A stretch of DNA of 63,847 nt, the filler included, from Reticulomyxa filosa (taxonomy: Eukaryota; Protista; Foraminifera): assembly GCA_000512085.1 (NCBI GenBank). It is 17 parts of 17 records of this genome, joined end to end, with 100 filler letters (N's around TTAATTAATTAA, not from the genome) between each part and the next. Parts side by side here need not be neighbours in the genome. Positions count along the whole stretch, not along the records: positions 55,357 to 63,847 come from ASPP01005602.1; 16 more parts are not named here. One strand, 5' to 3'. Position 1 is the first letter of the stretch. Each line of letters begins with the position of its first letter. The notes below the pieces were generated by a model. It made no database searches. It had not been told where the DNA came from and saw only the letters and a program-made list of their open reading frames with translations. Shown piece by piece: positions 55,257 to 63,847 of this stretch. Position numbers and translations under genes: made by a program.

Positions 55257-55428
55257 NNNNNNNNNNNNNNNNNNNNNNNNNNNNNNNNNNNNNNNNNNNN
55301 TTAATTAATTAANNNNNNNNNNNNNNNNNNNNNNNNNNNNNNNNNNNNNNNNNNNNTTTTTTTTTTTTGTTGCTGTTCTTCTCCTTCCTTGACTTGCTTG
55401 CTTTGATGTTCTTTTTTTGCTGGTGAAG

Positions 55429-55734
55429 GTGTCATCAAATACATTGGGAAAGTGCATTTTGCGAAAGATGAGAAATATGGAGTTGAACTAGATGAGCCGA
55501 TCCCTAAAGGGAACGATGGAAGCGTTGACAGATACAAATACTTTGAGGCCAAGTTTGGATATGGCACATTTGTTACCAAAGCAATGATCGCCAAACGCTT
55601 GGAAAGCGCCAAACAAGATATGAGGCCCGTAATCTTCAAAGTTGGAGACTGTGTTATGCTTAAAGACAAAAAAATGGTTAAAAAAAATAGACAAAATTCT
55701 TTCAATGTTTGAAACAAACGACACAATAATAATG

Positions 55735-55773
<39 letters not shown>

Positions 55774-58700
55774 AACAATGTCAACGAGGGGACAGGTATT
55801 GTCCGGTATATTGGACAAACTAATATGGTCAATGCAATTTTGGTTGGACTGGAACTTACGGAAACAATTGAAAACGGAAGTGATGGAAAATTCGGAGGCA
55901 AGAGGTATCTTGTCGACTATTGTGTTCATCTTGTGAAGAAGGGGGGGGGGGGGGGGGAGGTGAATGCAAAACATTGATGGAAAAAAAATGACAACCTAAC
56001 AACACGACAGGTACTTTGACAGCAAAGCTGGACATGGATATTTGCACGTATTACCGATGTCACAACCATTGTCAAGACACGAGAGGAAATCGAAAAAGAA
56101 AACGAAAAGCAGCCCGAAACCATTCCGGACGACTTGGAAATAGAGGCCCCGTTGCAATATCAACAAAAAGTGAACGTTGGAGACCGAGTTACACTGACCG
56201 ACAATCGCATGGGGGTGGTGCGCTATGTGGGAAATACCGATTTCGCCGCCGACGAAATGTACGGAATTGAACTGGATGGCAAACTGTCCAATGGCCATGA
56301 CGGCGCGCAAGGCAACACAAGATATTTCACCACCGAAGCTGGACGTGGCGTGTTTGCTCGTAGAGCCAGTATCATTTCTATCGATTCTTTGAAGCCACCC
56401 CAAGCCGATCAAAACAGTGTCCTCCCCGAGGATGTGGACCCGTTGTCCCAATGGAATGATCAACAATTGAACGAAAATGACAAAATGGAAACCATTGGCG
56501 AGGAAGACGAAGATGAGGATGAAGAAGAGCCTGAGAACGTTCATCCTGAAGTTGATAGCTATGTGACATTAGATAATGGCCACAATGGAGTTAAGTTTTT
56601 ATTGTAGTCAGTACCAAATGGTATATACATTGATATGTGTGTGTGTATATGTGTATATGTGTATACATGTATATATGTGTATATGTATATATGCATATGT
56701 ACATATGTATACATATTTGTAATATTCCATGTTTGTTTTCTTCGTGCATTGGACTTTGTTTACGATATTATTATTAGATGGTACGATACATCGGAGTAAC
56801 CGACTTTAGCAAAGAGGAAGAAGTGTTTGGAATAGAGCTAGACCAGTGGGACGCAGCAGCAAACGACGGATCAAAAAATGGCAAGCGATATTTTAGTTGC
56901 AAAAATGGACGTGGCATGTTTGTGAAGCGAAGCAACATTATAAAAGTGTTGAAGATCCCAAAGAACTTGCGCCACTTGGACCTGAAAGAGCTGCTGAACG
57001 ACGAGCGCGACGTGAGGACCGGGAAGAAATTGGGACTGCAAGAACGTCTCAAAATGCTGGAAGAAAAAGAAAAAGAAGTTAAAAAAGAACAAGAATTGGA
57101 AAAAATGATTGAAAATCTGCAAGTCGGCGATCGTGTGGAATTGGATCGAGGACGAACAGGTGTTATTTTTATTTTTTAAAAATCCATCATTACTATTATA
57201 CATATATATATATATATGTATATACACCTTCAATTTCATAAGTGCATACAAAAACTTTGACTTTGTTGTCCAACAATGGAAAGGTATTGTTCGCTACGTT
57301 GGACCGATGGACGCATCGGGAGGCGGAGAAGCAATTGGCATTGAGTTGGACAAGTACTCTCAGCTTGCACACGACGGCAAGGGCAAGTTTGCGACGAAGC
57401 AGGGCTACGGTTTGTTTGTGCGTGCGAAAGACATCAAAAAGGTGTATCCACAGGTACCGGAAAATACGGAGGATGAAGACATTGACAATGGTCCACCATT
57501 GACGGGTGAAAACATTGTTGTGAACGTGTTGGACCGCATCCGTTTGCAAGGTGGACGCACTGGCGTGGTGCGTTACTTGGGGCCATTGGAAGGCATGGAG
57601 GACCCGAAGAAGCAATACATTGGAGTGGAGTTGGACGAGTGGGATCCGAATGGATCCACGGGCATGTTCCAAGGAATGCAATACTTTCGCGTCAATGCGA
57701 ACAAAGGAGCATTCGTTGACAGATCGCAAGTGGTGGAAAACCTGGGCAACTCAGTGTTAGTGAGCAAGAGTCTTTTGCCTCCGGAGCCTTATCGTGGCGA
57801 TTTGGCCAAAGGACAAATTGTGAAGACAAAGTATTATGGGGTGGGCACGATCATGTTTATCGGAGAGGTCGGTTTCAGCGAAGGAGAAGTGGTCGGATTG
57901 GACATGAAGCATTGGGGACCCAATGGAAGTGACGGCAGTATCAACAACAGAGAATACTTCCAATGCCAGCCTGGACATGGTTATTTTTGTTCTCGAAAAG
58001 ATATTGAGACTGTTGTGAGCGGAATCGAAGCGGAACGCATTGCCAATTTCAATGACAGCAAAAATAGTGACAAGTTTGTAGGATGGATCCAACCCAAAAA
58101 TTACTTGCGAAGAGTACCTGTGATCAAAGATCGCGTACGAGTATTTGACGGACAGACGGGAGTGGTTCAGTTTATCGGCAAAGTCGACTTTGCCGATGGC
58201 ACATGGATCGGCTTAGTTTTAGACGACTTTTCCCCAATGCCACGGATGGGACTGTGAAGAATAAAAACTACTTTCGAACCAAGCCCCAGCGAGGGTTCTT
58301 TGTTAAGCAAAAATACCTGATTGAACATCTGGGGTCCACCATCAACACCCCGCTCGATCGCATGTTGGGAATTAGCACCCGAAAGAGCGAAAATGTGCAA
58401 TTCCAAGTCGGCGATCGGATTCAATTGGCGGAAGGAGGGACCGGCGTGGTCAAATATGTCGGCGGTGATCCCAATGAAGAGAACGACACGGAGCCGATCA
58501 TTGGAGTGGAATTGGACCGATGGGATCCAAATGCAAACGATGGCAAGTTCAAAGGCAGACCCTTGTTCAACACCAAAATGGGCCGAGGCATGTTCACTCG
58601 ACGTCAATCGGTGTTGCAAGTGCTGCCCTCCAAAGCAAATGATTTGCCGCATTTGAAAGAGCTGCCCGACAAAGGCGATCGTGTTCGTCTGCGCTCCGGC

Positions 58701-61700
58701 GAAGAAGGCATCGTGCAAAAGATTGTGGACGATCTAACCACTTTCCCACCACAAAAAGAGATTCAAATTGCGTTTTTGGATTCATCCAATTCGGGTGTGC
58801 CCAACACCCGACTGGTGACTCTGGGCGAGCTCAGTGAGAATTTGGGTAAATACTACGACGAACGCTATGCCAGTTTGCAGAACAAGCAATTGAATATCAA
58901 AGTGGGCGATCACGTGCGACTGCTCCGTGGCAAGACAGGCATTATCAAATACATTGGACCCGTTGGCGAGGAGTCGGAGTTGATTGGCATCGAATTGGAT
59001 CTATGGAATCCCAGTGCTCACAATGGCAAGGGCGTGTTTCAGGCGGCCAATGGACGTGGCTTTTTCACAAAGCGATCAGCAATTGTGGAAATCATTGAAA
59101 AGCCCGAGGAAGCTGAGCAAGCGAAAATTCAGACTCAACGGTATCGACAAATGCGCTATCTTAAAAAAAAATTGTACAAAATCGAACAGTTGGAAAAAAA
59201 AAACGCCACGGCAAAGAACTCGATTCCGAACAACTCCAAAGTATTCAAATCAAACCATTGGTCCAAAGACAACTAAACGAGTTGAGAGAGGCGTTCAATC
59301 GAAGCTATCCCTCCGTGGAAATTGACGACATTGTCAAACGTGAATCCACCATCGAGTCCAAAGGCTCGGGCTTGCCTCTCGTCAATCCAAAACCAGAACT
59401 CAAGGAAGGAGACAAGGTCGTGCTGGACACTGGCGAAACTGGCAAGATCATATTCATTGGCTGGGTCAATTTTGATGAACGCGAAATGCTCGGCATTCTG
59501 CTGGACAACTGGTCGCCCAATGGACACGAGGGCACCGTGGACGGAGTGCAGTACTTTTCGGCTCCTGAAGGAAGGGGTCTCATGGTCCCGTTTGAGTCCG
59601 TCGTCGGCTTGTATGACGAAAGCAAACATCAACACAAACGAAAAAAACCAGACAACCAGCAGCGTCAATCGATGGAATTGGAGCCTGTCAAAGAAGAGGA
59701 AACCGAAGACATCGAAGACAAAGAAAACGAAGAAAAAATGTTGGAAGATATCCCAGAGTTGGAAGAAACGAGCGAAACCAAGGAAGTGTATGAGGATCTC
59801 CCGAAATTGGGTGAACGAATCGATTTAGGAGGTACTGTGATATATCTATCATTGCATTTTTTTTAAACTGAAGCACATGTACATACATATATACATATAT
59901 GTATATATGTATGTGTATATATGTATGTGTATATGATATACATATATGCATATACATATATGTATATGTATATGTATATAAATACAATTAAATCATTCAT
60001 ACGTACACAAACAACAATAGGAAAATCGGGAGTGGTAAAGTATATCGGAAAAACAGAGTTTAGTCAAGACGAACCCGTGGTCGGAGTCGAGCTGGACTAT
60101 TGGACAGCCAACGCGACCGACGGATCACTGTTTGGCAAGCGGTACTTTGATACGTTGCCGGGAAAAGGCTTTTTCATTCGCAAGACGTCATTTGCGTCAC
60201 TCAACGAAATGATAGGCGACAAAGAAAGGGAACACATCCTGCGCCAAAACTCGTTGGCCTTGGAAAACTTTGAGCTGAGGGCTTTGCCAGTATACTTTGA
60301 CGTTGGGGATCATGTGGTGACGAGCGAAGGCCAAAGCGGAATTGTAAAGTTTTTGGGACCTGCCAATTTTTCCTCCGGAGAAATGGTCGGCCTGGCATTG
60401 GACGAATGGGACCCGAATGGACACACAGGCACCGTTCGCAATGAAAAGTACTTTGAAGCCAAGGAAGGACATGGGTGGTTTGTGCGTGCGGACAAAATCA
60501 CAATGAAAATTGAGAATGAACAAGAATGGAAAATCAAAAAGCTTGAAATGGAAAGACGAAAAGCAAAAAAAAAGTCTCGCATGAAAATTGAACTTGGACA
60601 ACGTGTCCAAATTTCAGGAGGCCAACGTGGATCGGTCTTGTTTTATGCCAAGACCGACTTTGGAGGGAATGACAAGTGGGTTGGCTTGCAATTGGACGAT
60701 TGGTATTACAATGCCCATGACGGCACCGTCCGAGGAAAGTCGTACTTTGTCACCCACAAGGGCTATGGGTATTTTGTGAAACCCGAGTCTGTGACGATCA
60801 CATTGCGACGTGCGGAGGAAAAGAAGTCGGTCGAGTCGTTGTCCACAATGCCCGAAATTAATGATCGCGTTCGAACCATTCGAGGCAAAACTGGCGTTGT
60901 GCGCTATGTTGGAAAAGTTGATTTCGCAGAGGGAATACTTATTGGAGTCGAGTTGGATCGATGGAGTCCAAATGGCAATGACGGATCTGTGAAAAACCAT
61001 CTTTATTTCGAATGCACTCCAGGACGTGGCTACTTTACTCGTTTGGCACATTTGGTGGAGAACTTGGGCTCCACATTACCAACCTCATTGCAAAAGACGT
61101 CCAAAAAAGAATCCGAACATACCCCCAGAGACCCCCCGCCAGACTTCAAACTTGGAGACAAAGTGAAGCTGGCACATGGAAAGATTGGTGTTGTGAGATT
61201 CATTGGTACCACTGAAGACACGGGCACGGATGAAATTGTTGGCATTGAGTTTTGTGGCAAATCTTTTTTTTTTTTTTTTTTTTTTTGAATGGAGGGCGCC
61301 CCCTTTTCTTACATGACTTAATAAATACTTGGGAAATGAATAGATTGGATGGATGGGACGCAAATGCCAACGAAGGGGCCCTTGGAGGCAAACGATTGTT
61401 CGCCGCTGAAAAGGGACGAGGCTACTTTACTCGTCGAAGGTCAATCGCCAATATTGTGAGGACACATATCCGAGAAGGGGCGTACGCCAAATTGAAAGGG
61501 TTAGTGCAGTCGAGCAAGTTCAACGGCAAACTTGTGAAAATAATCGAATACGTGCCAAAGAAACAACGATGGAAAGTGAAACTGCACGGCAGCGGAAAGA
61601 AAAAAGACGGAAAGAAGAAATGCTTGGGTGTGAAAGAAGAAAACCTGACTCCAATCTTTGATTGGGAAGTGCCTCCGGACGCGGAATTGGACGAAAATCG

Positions 61701-63764
61701 TGTCACAAGAATGCCTTGGATGGGAGACCACGTACGTTTAAAAAATGGAAAGACTGGCGTCGTTCGCTATCTTGCACCATCCGGTCGTGCCAGCAAAGAA
61801 GCGAAAGAAGACAAGATGACAATAGGTTTGGAAATGGACGAATGGCATCCTTCTGGACACGATGGAACAGTGGACAACCGCAAGTATTTCGAATGCAAAG
61901 AAGGACACGGTTACTTCACCAATTTGGACGAATTAGCCGCAAACTTGGGACAATTTGATTTGAATGAAAATAAGGCGCCTTTGCCTCCCAAACCCAATTT
62001 CAAAGTCGGAGACGAGGTCCGATTGGCGCGAGGCAAAGTCGGCAAAGTCAAGTTTATTGGGACCACCGAGTTTAGCAATGGCGAAGAAATTGTGGGATTG
62101 GAACTAACCCAATGGACAAAAGGTGCCAATGATGGCAGCATGAATAGCAAGCGATATTTCTACGCCAAAGAGGGACGCGGCTATTTCACCCGAAAAACCT
62201 CTGTGGTCAATTTGGTATTGCCAAATGAAACGCACACCAATGAAAGCAGTCGATCTCGCCTTCGTCGCGAAATCAATCGGACAAAGAGAAAGCTACGAGA
62301 AATCGACGTGTTGGAAAAGCGACAAGAAAAGGGCGAAAAATTGCGACCGCCGCAATTACAGAAACTAGAAAACAAACCAGCGCTGTTGCAAAAATTGAAC
62401 GAATTGGAAAATGGAGACTATGACTTTGAAGCCCAGGATAGAGAAATGCAAACACAAAATTTGATGCGACGCAGCAATTTATTGGAAAGAAAGGCCACTT
62501 TGGATATGACCAATCTCGACAAAGCGCAGTGGCTTGGTCAACCATTGGTGGATGTTCAAATTGACGATGCGGTGAGATTGAAGAATGGGGCCACCGGTGT
62601 TGTGAAGTGGATTGGCAAAGTGCCAATATTAACAGACGAAGTAATCGGATTGGTAATGGACGAAAATAATCCCAATTTCCATAACGGCGAATTGGATGGC
62701 AAACAATATTTCAAAGTCGCCAATCAACGTGGCTATTTTGCATTGCGAGAGGAAATCCAGGAAAATCTGGGAACGACCAAACGTGCCCGTCGACGAGGCT
62801 CCGTCAATTTGGATCGAACGCCACAACGTCGCGACAGTGTTCACATTGGCGATACTGTCAACACTATTGAAGGAAAAGGAACAGTTGTTTGGAAAGGTGA
62901 TGTCCTTCGAGGAGAAGAAGACGGGAAAAAAGATGAAATGATCGGAATCGAATTGGAGCGCTTCAGCGCAAATGCAAAAGATGGCACTATCCAAGGTGTT
63001 GAGTACTTTGATAGCAAGCAAGGACGCGGCTTCTTTGCTCACAAGGAATCGGTTCAACTTGATTTTCCTCCTGATTTTGTGAGAAGCGGAACCACCAATA
63101 TTGACTTTGAAATTGTGCCAGGCGACAGAGTCAAAACAGAACATGGCTACACTGGAGTTGAGAAGGATGTGTTATTCATATACTTTTTTTTTTTCTTTCT
63201 TTATTTGTACAATATATACATATATGTACATATATATTTATATATGTGTATATGTATATATGCATATATGTAAGAAGAGACAATCAAATCGAGACTTGTT
63301 TTTTTTTTTAATAAAGGTCGTCCGATTTGTGGGCCCAGTACACTTTGAAGAAAAAGAGGAAATGGTCGGCATTGAATTGGATCACTGGTCGCCCAACGGC
63401 AATGACGGCAGTGTCCACGGACAAAGATATTTCTCGTGCCATGAAAACAGGGGCTTCTTTTGCACAAAAGCACAGATTGTGGAATCCATGGGCTCTTCCG
63501 TCAGCAACAACCATCGTCGAGGATCTCGCGATCTTGGAAAAGACGAAATCAAGGAAGAGGAATCAGACAACGAATGGACGAACAAGAAGAATGAACAAAT
63601 CAAGATTGGAGATCGCGTTGAATTAGATCGCGGGCGCAGAGGTGTGATCAAATGGATCGGACCAACTGATTTTAGTAGTGGTGAGGAAATGTTGGGTATT
63701 GAATTAGATGAATGGTGGATCAACGGCCACGATGGAAGTAAAAATGGCAAAAAAATACTTTCAG
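55429..63764 (+). CDS. Giant tandem CAP-Gly repeat protein (at least 22 domains; partial at both ends)
   Basis: Repeated VGDRV.L..G.TGVVRYVG..F...E.VG.ELD.W.PNG.DG...G..YF....GRG.F units across all exons. At least 6 internal GT-AG introns, and 4 single-base frameshifts in homopolymer runs (about 56041, 58232, 59194, 63749). Confidence 0.9.
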
Positions 63765-63808
63765 GTACGTTATTTTATGTTTCCCCTTGCTATCTTTCTG
63801 CAAAGCGA

Positions 63809-63847
<39 letters not shown>

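Follow-up and report, generated by a model that had tools for sequence, protein, structure and literature searches.

Does a single foraminiferan gene encode more than twenty tandem CAP-Gly domains and, if so, what would such an array bind? The question is raised by the complete contig ASPP01005602.1, which occupies positions 55,357 to 63,847 of the window (the whole stretch of 63,847 nucleotides that was analysed) and for which the original prediction had proposed a giant poly-CAP-Gly protein from a possibly foraminiferan host; the host is indeed the foraminiferan Reticulomyxa filosa. The CAP-Gly proteins characterised so far, textbook examples of factors that read the tyrosinated tubulin tail, have between one and three such domains.

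One reading frame across the contig

Eight exons lie on the + strand within 55429–63764, separated by seven internal GT-AG introns that are AT-rich (GC 0.26 versus 0.47 in the exons; Table 1). Four frame slips of one base each, all in homopolymers (TTT, TTTT/CCCC, A10 and A7), were located, and with exons and slips taken together 12 stop-free in-frame pieces were obtained, totalling 2447 codons with 0 stops; read in the two off-frames, they hold 201 stops in 4870 codons (∼4%). Position 55429 is the first base past an AG acceptor and 63764 the last base ahead of a GT donor, so the predicted limits coincide with splice sites. Neither a start nor a stop codon of the poly-CAP-Gly gene was found on the contig, and both contig ends lie inside introns, i.e. 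in a T12 run at the beginning and an A38 run at the finish, bearing out the prediction that the gene extends past both ends.

The deposited annotation divides the contig into four genes encoding 454, 316, 483 and 1226 aa. That these are correct, adjacent and independent genes is very improbable, even though it is the deposited model: every boundary halves a CAP-Gly domain, the cut falling at a GT-AG intron in two cases and at a homopolymer slip in the third, and the halves rejoin via the intron or the one-base slip; the intergenic gaps are just 128, 105 and 55 bp; the 53-nt ‘intron’ by which RFI_06886 bridges the A10 slip deletes sequence aligning to paralogue coding sequence; and the paralogue RFI_31450 is modelled over the same region as a single 2604-aa protein. 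Because all three boundaries cut CAP-Gly domains, we read the contig as one gene, as had been claimed. On this sequence evidence the contig represents a single very large R. filosa gene by an internal fragment no shorter than 2447 codons, and from the sequence logic and the paralogues we infer one transcript.

The four slips could be real mutations instead of assembly errors, in which case the contig would hold a poly-CAP-Gly gene copy that is decaying as a pseudogene. Four slips within 7.4 kb and the existence of several paralogues speak for such decay, but we consider it improbable, since the 2447 codons contain no stop versus ∼100 expected by chance, the splice sites are intact, and paralogue conservation is equal on either side of every slip. 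Moreover, every slip sits in a homopolymer and the contig is itself broken off at such runs (T12 and A38), a sign that the assembly handled homopolymers poorly. In the public annotation, homopolymer errors and contig breaks have fragmented this contig and its paralogues, and merging is warranted.

Table 1. Exons, introns, slips, public gene boundaries and CAP-Gly units (D) of ASPP01005602.1, in window positions; L002 is the contig of paralogue RFI_31450
Feature	Position	Strand	Details
Intron, 3′ part	55357..55428	+	T12 run; acceptor ...GTGAAG/GTG; GC 0.35; contig begins within
Exon 1 (frame 2)	55429..55676	+	then intron 55677-55788 (112 nt, GT-AG)
D1	55429..55592	+	loop PIPKGNDG; N-terminal strand upstream of contig
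D2	55638..56070	+	loop TIENGSDG; split by introns 1, 2 and slip 1
Exon 2	55789..55904	+	then intron 55905-56010 (106 nt, GT-AG, contains G17 run)
Exon 3	56011..56589	+	slip 1 at TTT 56041-56043; then intron 56590-56777 (188 nt)
D3	56176..56373	+	loop KLSNGHDG
D4	56557..56939	+	loop WDAAANDG; split by intron 3
Exon 4	56778..57159	+	then intron 57160-57283 (124 nt)
D5	57120..57432	+	loop YSQLAHDG; split by intron 4
Public gene 1/gene 2 boundary	at intron 57160-57283	+	mid D5
Exon 5	57284..59831	+	slips 2 and 3; then intron 59832-60020 (189 nt)
D6	57526..57732	+	loop WDPNGSTG
D7	57808..58005	+	loop WGPNGSDG
D8	58123..58316	+	loop FS(x)NATDG; contains slip 2; 92% identity to counterpart in paralogue L002
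Slip 2, TTTT/CCCC	58228-58235		inside D8; boundary of public genes 2/3
D9	58407..58613	+	loop WDPNANDG
Dx, degenerate unit ‘PDKGDRVRLRSGEEG...’	58671..58865	+	position 10
D11	58902..59084	+	loop WNPSAHNG
Slip 3, A10	59194-59203		in exon 5
D12	59405..59602	+	loop WSPNGHEG
D13	59807..60193	+	loop WTANATDG; split by intron 5
Public gene 3/gene 4 boundary	at intron 59832-60020		inside D13
Exon 6	60021..61248	+	then intron 61249-61343 (95 nt, contains T23 run)
D14	60302..60496	+	loop WDPNGHTG
D15	60593..60790	+	loop WYYNAHDG, identical in paralogue L002
D16	60857..61051	+	loop WSPNGNDG; unit chosen for folding
D17	61151..61446	+	loop WDANANEG; split by intron 6
Exon 7	61344..63156	+	then intron 63157-63316 (160 nt)
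D18	61720..61932	+	loop WHPSGHDG
D19	62005..62205	+	loop WTKGANDG
D20	62560..62754	+	loop NNPNFHNG
D21	62845..63054	+	loop FSANAKDG
D22	63118..63478	+	loop WSPNGNDG; split by intron 7
Exon 8	63317..63764	+	slip 4 at A7 63749-63755; ends at donor CAG/GTACGT
D23	63602..63764	+	loop WWINGHDG, identical in paralogue L002; slip 4; C-terminal third past contig end
Intron, 5′ part	63765..63847	+	contig stops within, in A38 run

Twenty-two CAP-Gly domains with an altered binding loop

Every one of the ten long ORF pieces on the + strand matched Pfam CAP_GLY (PF01302) with 32.5–225.5 bits, above the gathering cut-off of 26.5 bits (E 8e-8 to 5e-68; 23 stretches matched), and a profile made from the array's own repeats detected units on the + strand only. 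Once the halves split by introns or slips had been merged, the units numbered 22 CAP-Gly domains and one further, degenerate one, the very count predicted. All 22 align to the profile. The glycine and aromatic scaffold of CAP-Gly domains (G..G..YF....G.G.F) is kept: an alignment of 14 complete units shows four glycines and a phenylalanine without exception, and another phenylalanine in at least 90%. Units follow one another at ∼95 residues start to start, with flexible linkers of 12–118 residues, several of them acidic, and the net charges of domains and linkers, −8 and −18, are together near neutral to acidic. The repeats are ∼40% identical within the protein versus 52–92% to the same-position unit of a paralogue, so the array is old.

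The degenerate unit, Dx, retains ‘GDRVxLxxGxEG’ without a binding loop; conservation, with an ENLG[RK] motif, was seen in nine members of the family. It had no Pfam match; its predicted fold is a small five-stranded beta-barrel (pLDDT 86), for which a structure search returned weak PDB matches only, CAP-Gly among these. Dx is best read as a CAP-Gly-derived degenerate barrel.

The AF2 model of D16 (pLDDT 95.9) has the CAP-Gly fold, its best PDB matches being the CAP-Gly domains of CLIP-170 and p150Glued (TM 0.87, rmsd 1.2–1.5 Å) and nearly all of the top 40 being CAP-Gly domains. CAP-Gly domains read EEY/F tails through the GKNDG loop (PMC13406575, PMC3806363). Neither GKNDG nor GKHDG occurs in any of the 22 units: in place of the Lys they all have Gly, Ala or Phe, and at the Asn position H, N, S, T or K, in line with the predicted loop alteration. 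Instead, 15 of the 22 carry W-x-x-[N/S/G/A]-[G/A]-x-x-G (19 if F or Y is permitted for W), with the final Gly in every unit, and in a HMMER alignment with p150Glued the GKNDG residues fall opposite N-[G/A]-x-D-G. This loop type is family-specific, as the best 40 homologues hold 0 canonical and 88 family-type motifs versus 217 and 4 in the next 80 matches, mostly animal CLIP3/4. Compared with the paralogues, the loops are 79% identical and the remainder of the domain 70%; they differ among units, but the loop at a given position is conserved between paralogues.

A family in Foraminifera and environmental sequences

At least three paralogues in R. filosa (RFI_31450, RFI_03278 and RFI_05929/05930) are collinear with the array at 52–72% identity; their units are orthologous one to one with those of the contig, and their alignments cross the slip sites without interruption. 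RFI_31450 (ETO05945.1, ‘hypothetical protein, partial’, contig ASPP01027642.1) is a single deposited model with 23 units, collinear with D3–D23 (53–72% identity over HSPs, 52–92% per domain), and has the same loop type and a degenerate unit that is 66% identical. An identity of ∼60% makes it a paralogue in its own right and a different gene; its contig extends further 3′, to ∼28 units, of which the last has a near-canonical GKHDG loop and precedes a Cys/His-rich segment; the most complete paralogue would have about 28–30 units. With this 2604-aa protein and several other long R. filosa fragments in GenBank, the uniqueness originally ascribed to the array was overstated.

Further relatives were an independent, Illumina-era TARA marine scaffold, whose ORF P0122 encodes an uninterrupted 1694 aa with 14 collinear units, and multi-unit proteins of Nonionella stella and Bolivina argentea in EukProt. 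Together with RFI_03278, RFI_05929 + RFI_05930 and RFI_09516, these have 5–14 units per fragment and non-GKNDG loops of the window array's type, differing from it in being fragments or shorter proteins at 28–62% identity; RFI_03278, RFI_05929/05930 and the TARA ORF are collinear with it. None of these entries, RFI_31450 included, carries a name or, in the literature searched, a description. We define a foraminiferal giant poly-CAP-Gly family by >10 collinear units, an N-[G/A]-x-D-G loop and an ‘ENLG’ degenerate unit after unit 9, and the window array has the collinearity, the loop type and the degenerate unit. The family is known so far only from Foraminifera and environmental sequences, and databases hold it as fragmented "hypothetical proteins". 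Our literature search found no paper on giant poly-CAP-Gly proteins of Foraminifera; hence, of the claim to an undescribed system, the lack of a name and description stands, but long arrays as such were already in GenBank.

A 1430-aa ORF, P0254, on ENA metagenome contig ERZ26695579 ctg117655 (L005) likewise comprises 14 tandem CAP-Gly units. As an exact tandem repeat of 246 nt at 97% DNA identity it is a recent amplification, with the loop PKARHDG, unlike the old, ∼40% identical repeats of the window.

Candidate ligands and function

We favour, with a little more confidence than doubt, the reading that the contig is a fragment of a giant poly-CAP-Gly gene acting as a multivalent tubulin-tail or microtubule scaffold. 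Judged by domain homology, the function first proposed, binding or bundling of the microtubule lattice with a changed tail specificity, would be reasonable. Every unit would keep the CAP-Gly peptide groove and bind a C-terminal tail. Alpha-tubulin tails recur every 8 nm along the microtubule, and because of this repeat a chain of ∼30 weak readers could bind by avidity along or between microtubules, and so might bundle, stabilise or capture tubulin in the very dynamic reticulopodial microtubule system. The change of the GKNDG Lys to Gly/Ala and the added Trp in most units imply, as judged from the loops, a ligand preference unlike that of classical EEY/F readers.

The near neutral to acidic charge means that the protein is without the basic flanks that aid lattice binding of CLIP-170 and p150Glued; with the GKNDG Lys missing in all 22 units as well, tubulin binding is not assured. 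One giant poly-CAP-Gly protein could instead read no tubulin tails and serve as a scaffold or condensate-forming hub for proteins with C-terminal aromatic tails, ubiquitin or its own acidic linkers, which we regard as possible though rather unlikely. Besides the missing lysine and the net charge, this is favoured by the unit-specific but position-conserved loops, suggesting several distinct ligands or registers, and by two precedents, namely that CYLD CAP-Gly3 binds ubiquitin (PDB 7owc/7owd) and that a Gly substitution in the Trypanosoma brucei TBC-B loop shifts the seating of the peptide in the groove (PMC3806363). It is disfavoured by the nearest folds and sequences, which are tubulin- and EB-binding CAP-Gly domains (41–49% identity to CLIP-170 and p150Glued), by the retained loop Asp-Gly and glycine and aromatic scaffold, and by the presence of the family in organisms whose microtubule system is unusually elaborate.

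To our knowledge, no lineage remodels its microtubules faster than Foraminifera, and a molecular explanation for this has yet to be given. The poly-CAP-Gly array is a concrete candidate for a role in this remodelling. Foraminiferal microtubules convert into helical filaments (PMC4990898). An extension of the tubulin-scaffold reading, speculative and unlikely in its entirety, is a lineage-specific foraminiferal MAP class in which ∼30 rewired-loop CAP-Gly readers with position-specific specificities would zip along successive dimer tails over a few hundred nanometres, may be Ca2+-controlled via C-terminal EF-hands, and may organise the fast bundling, sliding and microtubule-to-helical-filament transitions of reticulopodia.

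Comparison with characterised CAP-Gly proteins

CLIP-170 (CLIP1) and p150Glued (DCTN1) share the fold (TM 0.86–0.88, rmsd 1.2–1.6 Å) and the glycine and aromatic scaffold of the window units, but have 1–2 domains, canonical GKNDG, basic or Ser-rich flanks and long coiled coils; CLIP-170 has two N-terminal CAP-Gly domains and, at its C-terminus, zinc knuckles plus an ETF tail. No such hallmark was seen in the contig, which holds an internal gene fragment with both termini beyond it, and with CAP-Gly units and short linkers only this fragment does not show the CLIP family layout. CLIP3 and CLIP4 (CLIPR-59 family), with 2–3 CAP-Gly domains, were the best-scoring named non-foraminiferal matches; they are set apart by ankyrin repeats N-terminal to CAP-Gly, of which no ORF piece had a match, and by canonical GK[NH]DG loops. 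By its loops, the array would fall outside the EEY/F-tail-reading subclass of the CLIP-170, p150Glued, KIF13B and TBCB type. Precedents for an altered loop with an altered ligand are CYLD CAP-Gly and TBC-B of T. brucei (loop GKGDG, shifted peptide position), which differ in their substitutions and in being enzymes or chaperones with one to three of the domains. Against these, a conserved family with 20–30 CAP-Gly domains per polypeptide, all without the key lysine, would be a new MAP architecture.

Results

The poly-CAP-Gly array lies on the + strand of contig ASPP01005602.1 of the R. filosa assembly GCA_000512085.1, which encodes the deposited protein RFI_06886 (P0028, 483 aa), so the guess of the original prediction at a foraminiferan host was correct. 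Reading all frame transitions base by base delineated eight exons and, between them, seven GT-AG introns (95-189 nt); GC content is 0.26 in the introns versus 0.47 in the exons. Added together, the 12 in-frame pieces give 2447 stop-free codons, and the off-frames of the same pieces held 201 stops in 4870 codons; codon totals are sums across pieces, and single in-frame pieces were the input for searches and folds. Four one-base frame slips occur, all within homopolymers, a context from which we infer that they are assembly errors. For intron 1 a slip-free acceptor was preferred to a possible alternative that gives a better domain length and would need a fifth slip. Neither gene end is present, because the contig begins at T12 and finishes at A38, both intronic, and by these breaks homopolymers seem to limit the R. 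filosa assembly.

Public annotation divides this contig into four neighbouring + strand genes (products of 454, 316, 483 and 1226 aa) with gaps of 128, 105 and 55 bp, and all three boundaries fall inside CAP-Gly domains. In addition, the RFI_06886 model spans the A10 slip via a 53-nt 'intron', far below the 95-189 nt of the seven introns, and what it excises has a coding counterpart in the paralogue RFI_31450, with an alignment that begins 3 residues past the slip (56% identity over 209 residues, E 2e-73). This 'intron' appears to be an artefact that lets the model cross a one-base error within A10. Since its boundaries cut domains and its 'intron' removes sequence that is coding in the paralogue, the four-gene model was rejected, and the four public models are regarded as artefacts of slips and missed introns. 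Real frameshifts would instead make the locus a pseudogene, and this is unlikely, as the frame is without stops, the splice sites are intact, the slips are confined to homopolymers and conservation is equal on either side of each.

As side observations, the introns are full of homopolymers (G17, T23) and of (TA/TG)n and (TATG/TATA)n microsatellite-like repeats. Six introns, including the partial 5′ one, cut CAP-Gly units at nearly the same spot, directly 5′ of the '(G)VVRYVG' strand, with differing phases and exact codons, reflecting either an old position that slid or repeated gain at the same site.

Pfam CAP_GLY (PF01302) scored above its curated cut-off in all 10 long + strand ORF pieces (E 8e-8 to 5e-68), and a profile made from the repeats of the window itself found units on the + strand only. 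Neither that profile on the minus strand nor Pfam on the five longest minus-strand ORFs gave a match, and there was no Rfam match. Once split halves were merged, the set originally predicted between 55429 and 63764, 22 CAP-Gly domains plus a single degenerate unit, was recovered identically; the 14 uninterrupted units constitute alignment A1. The AF2 model of one unit, D16 (pLDDT 95.9), best matched the CAP-Gly domains of CLIP-170 and p150Glued in the PDB (TM 0.86-0.88, rmsd 1.2-1.6 Å, 41-49% identity), the same families that were returned by a profile search of PDB sequences. Linkers of 12-118 residues separate the units, start-to-start spacing being mostly 88-127 residues, and the net charge is near neutral to acidic overall (domains −8, linkers −18).

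The GKNDG loop of CAP-Gly domains flanks the peptide groove. Through its Asn it forms a hydrogen bond with the C-terminal EE[Y/F] tail that alpha-tubulin and plus-end-tracking proteins carry, and when the loop is changed the peptide sits differently (PMC3806363, PMC13406575). In the p150Glued alignment, 'LDEA-KGKNDG' lies over 'LdewspnahdG', so G-K-N-D-G corresponds to N-[G/A]-x-D-G here, with one extra residue before it. The canonical loop was found in none of the 22 units, bearing out the predicted alteration: the Lys position is occupied by Gly in 11 units, Ala in 10 and Phe in 1, and the Asn position by H, N, S, T or K. Four residues ahead of the Lys-equivalent position stands Trp in 15 of the 22 units, and Phe or Tyr in 4 more. 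Among the best 40 homologues, 88 family-type and 0 canonical loop motifs were counted, versus 4 and 217 among the next 80 matches, mostly animal CLIP3/4; judged by these counts, the non-canonical loop characterises the family.

In the degenerate unit, Dx, the N-terminal 'GDRVxLxxGxEG' is retained and the binding loop is absent; the unit is conserved across nine family members and has a motif of its own, 'ENLG[RK]'. It is predicted to form a five-stranded barrel (pLDDT 86); its sequence had no Pfam match, and the PDB matches of its model were all weak (E ≥ 0.08), to SH3-like barrels that include CAP-Gly, KOW and Tudor-like ones. From the N-terminal motif, Dx is likely of CAP-Gly origin. The linker following D11 was also considered as a repeated module recurring after D23 in paralogues, and was rejected as not significant (E 0.12 and 6.3).

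Searching 1.84 billion representative proteins with a profile yielded 8629 CAP-Gly proteins, of which the highest unit counts belonged to R. filosa RFI_31450 (P0121; 2604 aa, 23 units), an intronless, uninterrupted ORF of a TARA marine metagenome scaffold (P0122; 1694 aa, 14 units), R. filosa RFI_03278 (P0123; 1525 aa, 13 units) and R. filosa RFI_05929 (P0124; 994 aa, 10 units). Proteins of Nonionella stella and Bolivina argentea in the EukProt listing carry 5-8 units each. The TARA ORF is collinear with D8-D19, Dx included, at ~42% identity, and its source is presumably a marine member of the Foraminifera or of another retarian group. The R. filosa paralogues follow the window array in collinear order and are roughly equidistant (52-62% identity). 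Taken one by one and in order, D3-D23 correspond to units 1-19 on the contig of RFI_31450 (L002, ASPP01027642.1; ~28 units over 10.5 kb) at 52-92% identity, versus only ~40% between different units inside the window array. Even idiosyncratic loops are conserved by position, for instance WYYNAHDG in D15, WWINGHDG in D23, and NNPNFHNG versus TNPNYHNG in D20. By this pattern of identities and position-conserved loops, the array is ancient and was duplicated as a whole. The loop columns were 79% identical versus 70% for the rest of the domain in this unit-to-unit paralogue comparison, and constraint appears to act on the loop of each unit.

The array probably continues on contig ASPP01007144.1 (L004) as part of one gene, as far as the sequence at the junction indicates. 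L004 opens with an exon encoding exactly the C-terminal third that D23 lacks at the end of the window, and the paralogue has 'RYFQCAEGHGYFAHRRS' at that position; L004 could instead be owned by another paralogue with an unassembled D23 region. Further along, L004 carries RFI_09516, a 785-aa product that adds 7 units, as well as a Cys-rich stretch and EF-hands, with one EF-hand_6 match of 27.5 bits versus the 25-bit cut-off. If the join is true, the gene would comprise at least 29 CAP-Gly units, more than 3700 codons and a Cys-rich and EF-hand tail. On L002, the last CAP-Gly unit has a near-canonical GKHDG loop and is followed by a Cys/His-rich segment; the loop of the last unit on L004 is near-canonical too. 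Against Pfam, the Cys/His-rich stretch of L002 and L004 gave no family above cut-off. The EF-hands hint at a possible Ca2+ regulation of the family.

Features of the poly-CAP-Gly gene and related loci (window positions unless a contig is named)
Feature	Position	Detail
Contig ASPP01005602.1, whole	55357-63847	8491 bases
Eight exons, first to last	55429-63764
Intron 1 acceptor used	55788/55789
Intron 1 possible alternative acceptor	55795/55796	fifth slip, A7 run 55668-55674
Frame slip	56041-56043	TTT
Frame slip; public genes 2/3 boundary	58228-58235	TTTT/CCCC; splits '...IGLVLDDFSP / NATDGTVKNKNYF...'
Frame slip	59194-59203	A10
Frame slip	63749-63755	A7
Public genes 1/2 boundary	57160-57283	GT-AG intron; splits '...VGDRVELDRGRTG / IVRYVGP...'
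Public genes 3/4 boundary	59832-60020	GT-AG intron; splits '...GERIDLGG / KSGVVKY...'
53-nt 'intron' of RFI_06886	59189-59241
Degenerate unit Dx	58671-58865
Exon starts near '(G)VVRYVG' strand	55429, 56778, 57284, 60021, 63317
Homopolymer/microsatellite-like stretches in introns	55941-55957, 61264-61286, 56633-56711, 59877-59984, 63202-63272
Intron at end of window part of D23	63765-63847	'...GKKYFQ / gtacg...A38'
Start of L004	L004:1-100	A39, 'taag' acceptor, exon encoding 'CADNRGYFARRRSV'
Last unit, then zinc-finger-like Cys/His-rich stretch, EF-hands	L002:10192-11166, L004:3046-4707	GKHDG or GQHDG
TARA ORF P0122	L003:452-5536	TARA_SAMEA6035044
Exact tandem array	L005:6795-10236	ENA ERZ26695579 ctg117655

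Discussion

The locus is one large ORF system in which flexible linkers join 22 folded CAP-Gly modules, whose binding loops are both constrained and diversified. To date, only Foraminifera and unnamed environmental sequences have yielded members of its family. Each module may bind a C-terminal tail in its CAP-Gly groove, and, through multivalency, sites that bind weakly one by one would together hold a row of tails avidly, e.g. the alpha-tubulin tails spaced 8 nm apart on a microtubule, a distance that a 65-residue domain with a linker of ~30 residues could reach across. The outcome would be a bundling, stabilising or tubulin-capturing scaffold. Because the key Lys is absent in every one of the 22 units and basic flanks are missing, a ligand other than tubulin is a serious, if rather unlikely, rival.

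In the literature searched, no paper on CAP-Gly together with Reticulomyxa or a foraminifer was found, and the two works with both CAP-Gly and Rhizaria concern dynactin evolution and Vps9 proteins. Sequences of the family are already public as 'hypothetical' or 'CAP-Gly domain-containing' proteins. The CAP-Gly domain is known, and the uncharacterised part is the architecture, i.e. 20-30 units, a rewired loop, a conserved degenerate unit and whole-array paralogues. The only comparably long array of unnamed source is an ORF of 1430 aa on a 170-kb eukaryotic contig (L005), which has 14 exact tandem CAP-Gly units with a 246-nt period, 97% DNA identity and the loop PKARHDG. That array is a recent exact 14-fold amplification, whereas the window array, by its sequence, is old and divergent, and the two represent different phenomena.
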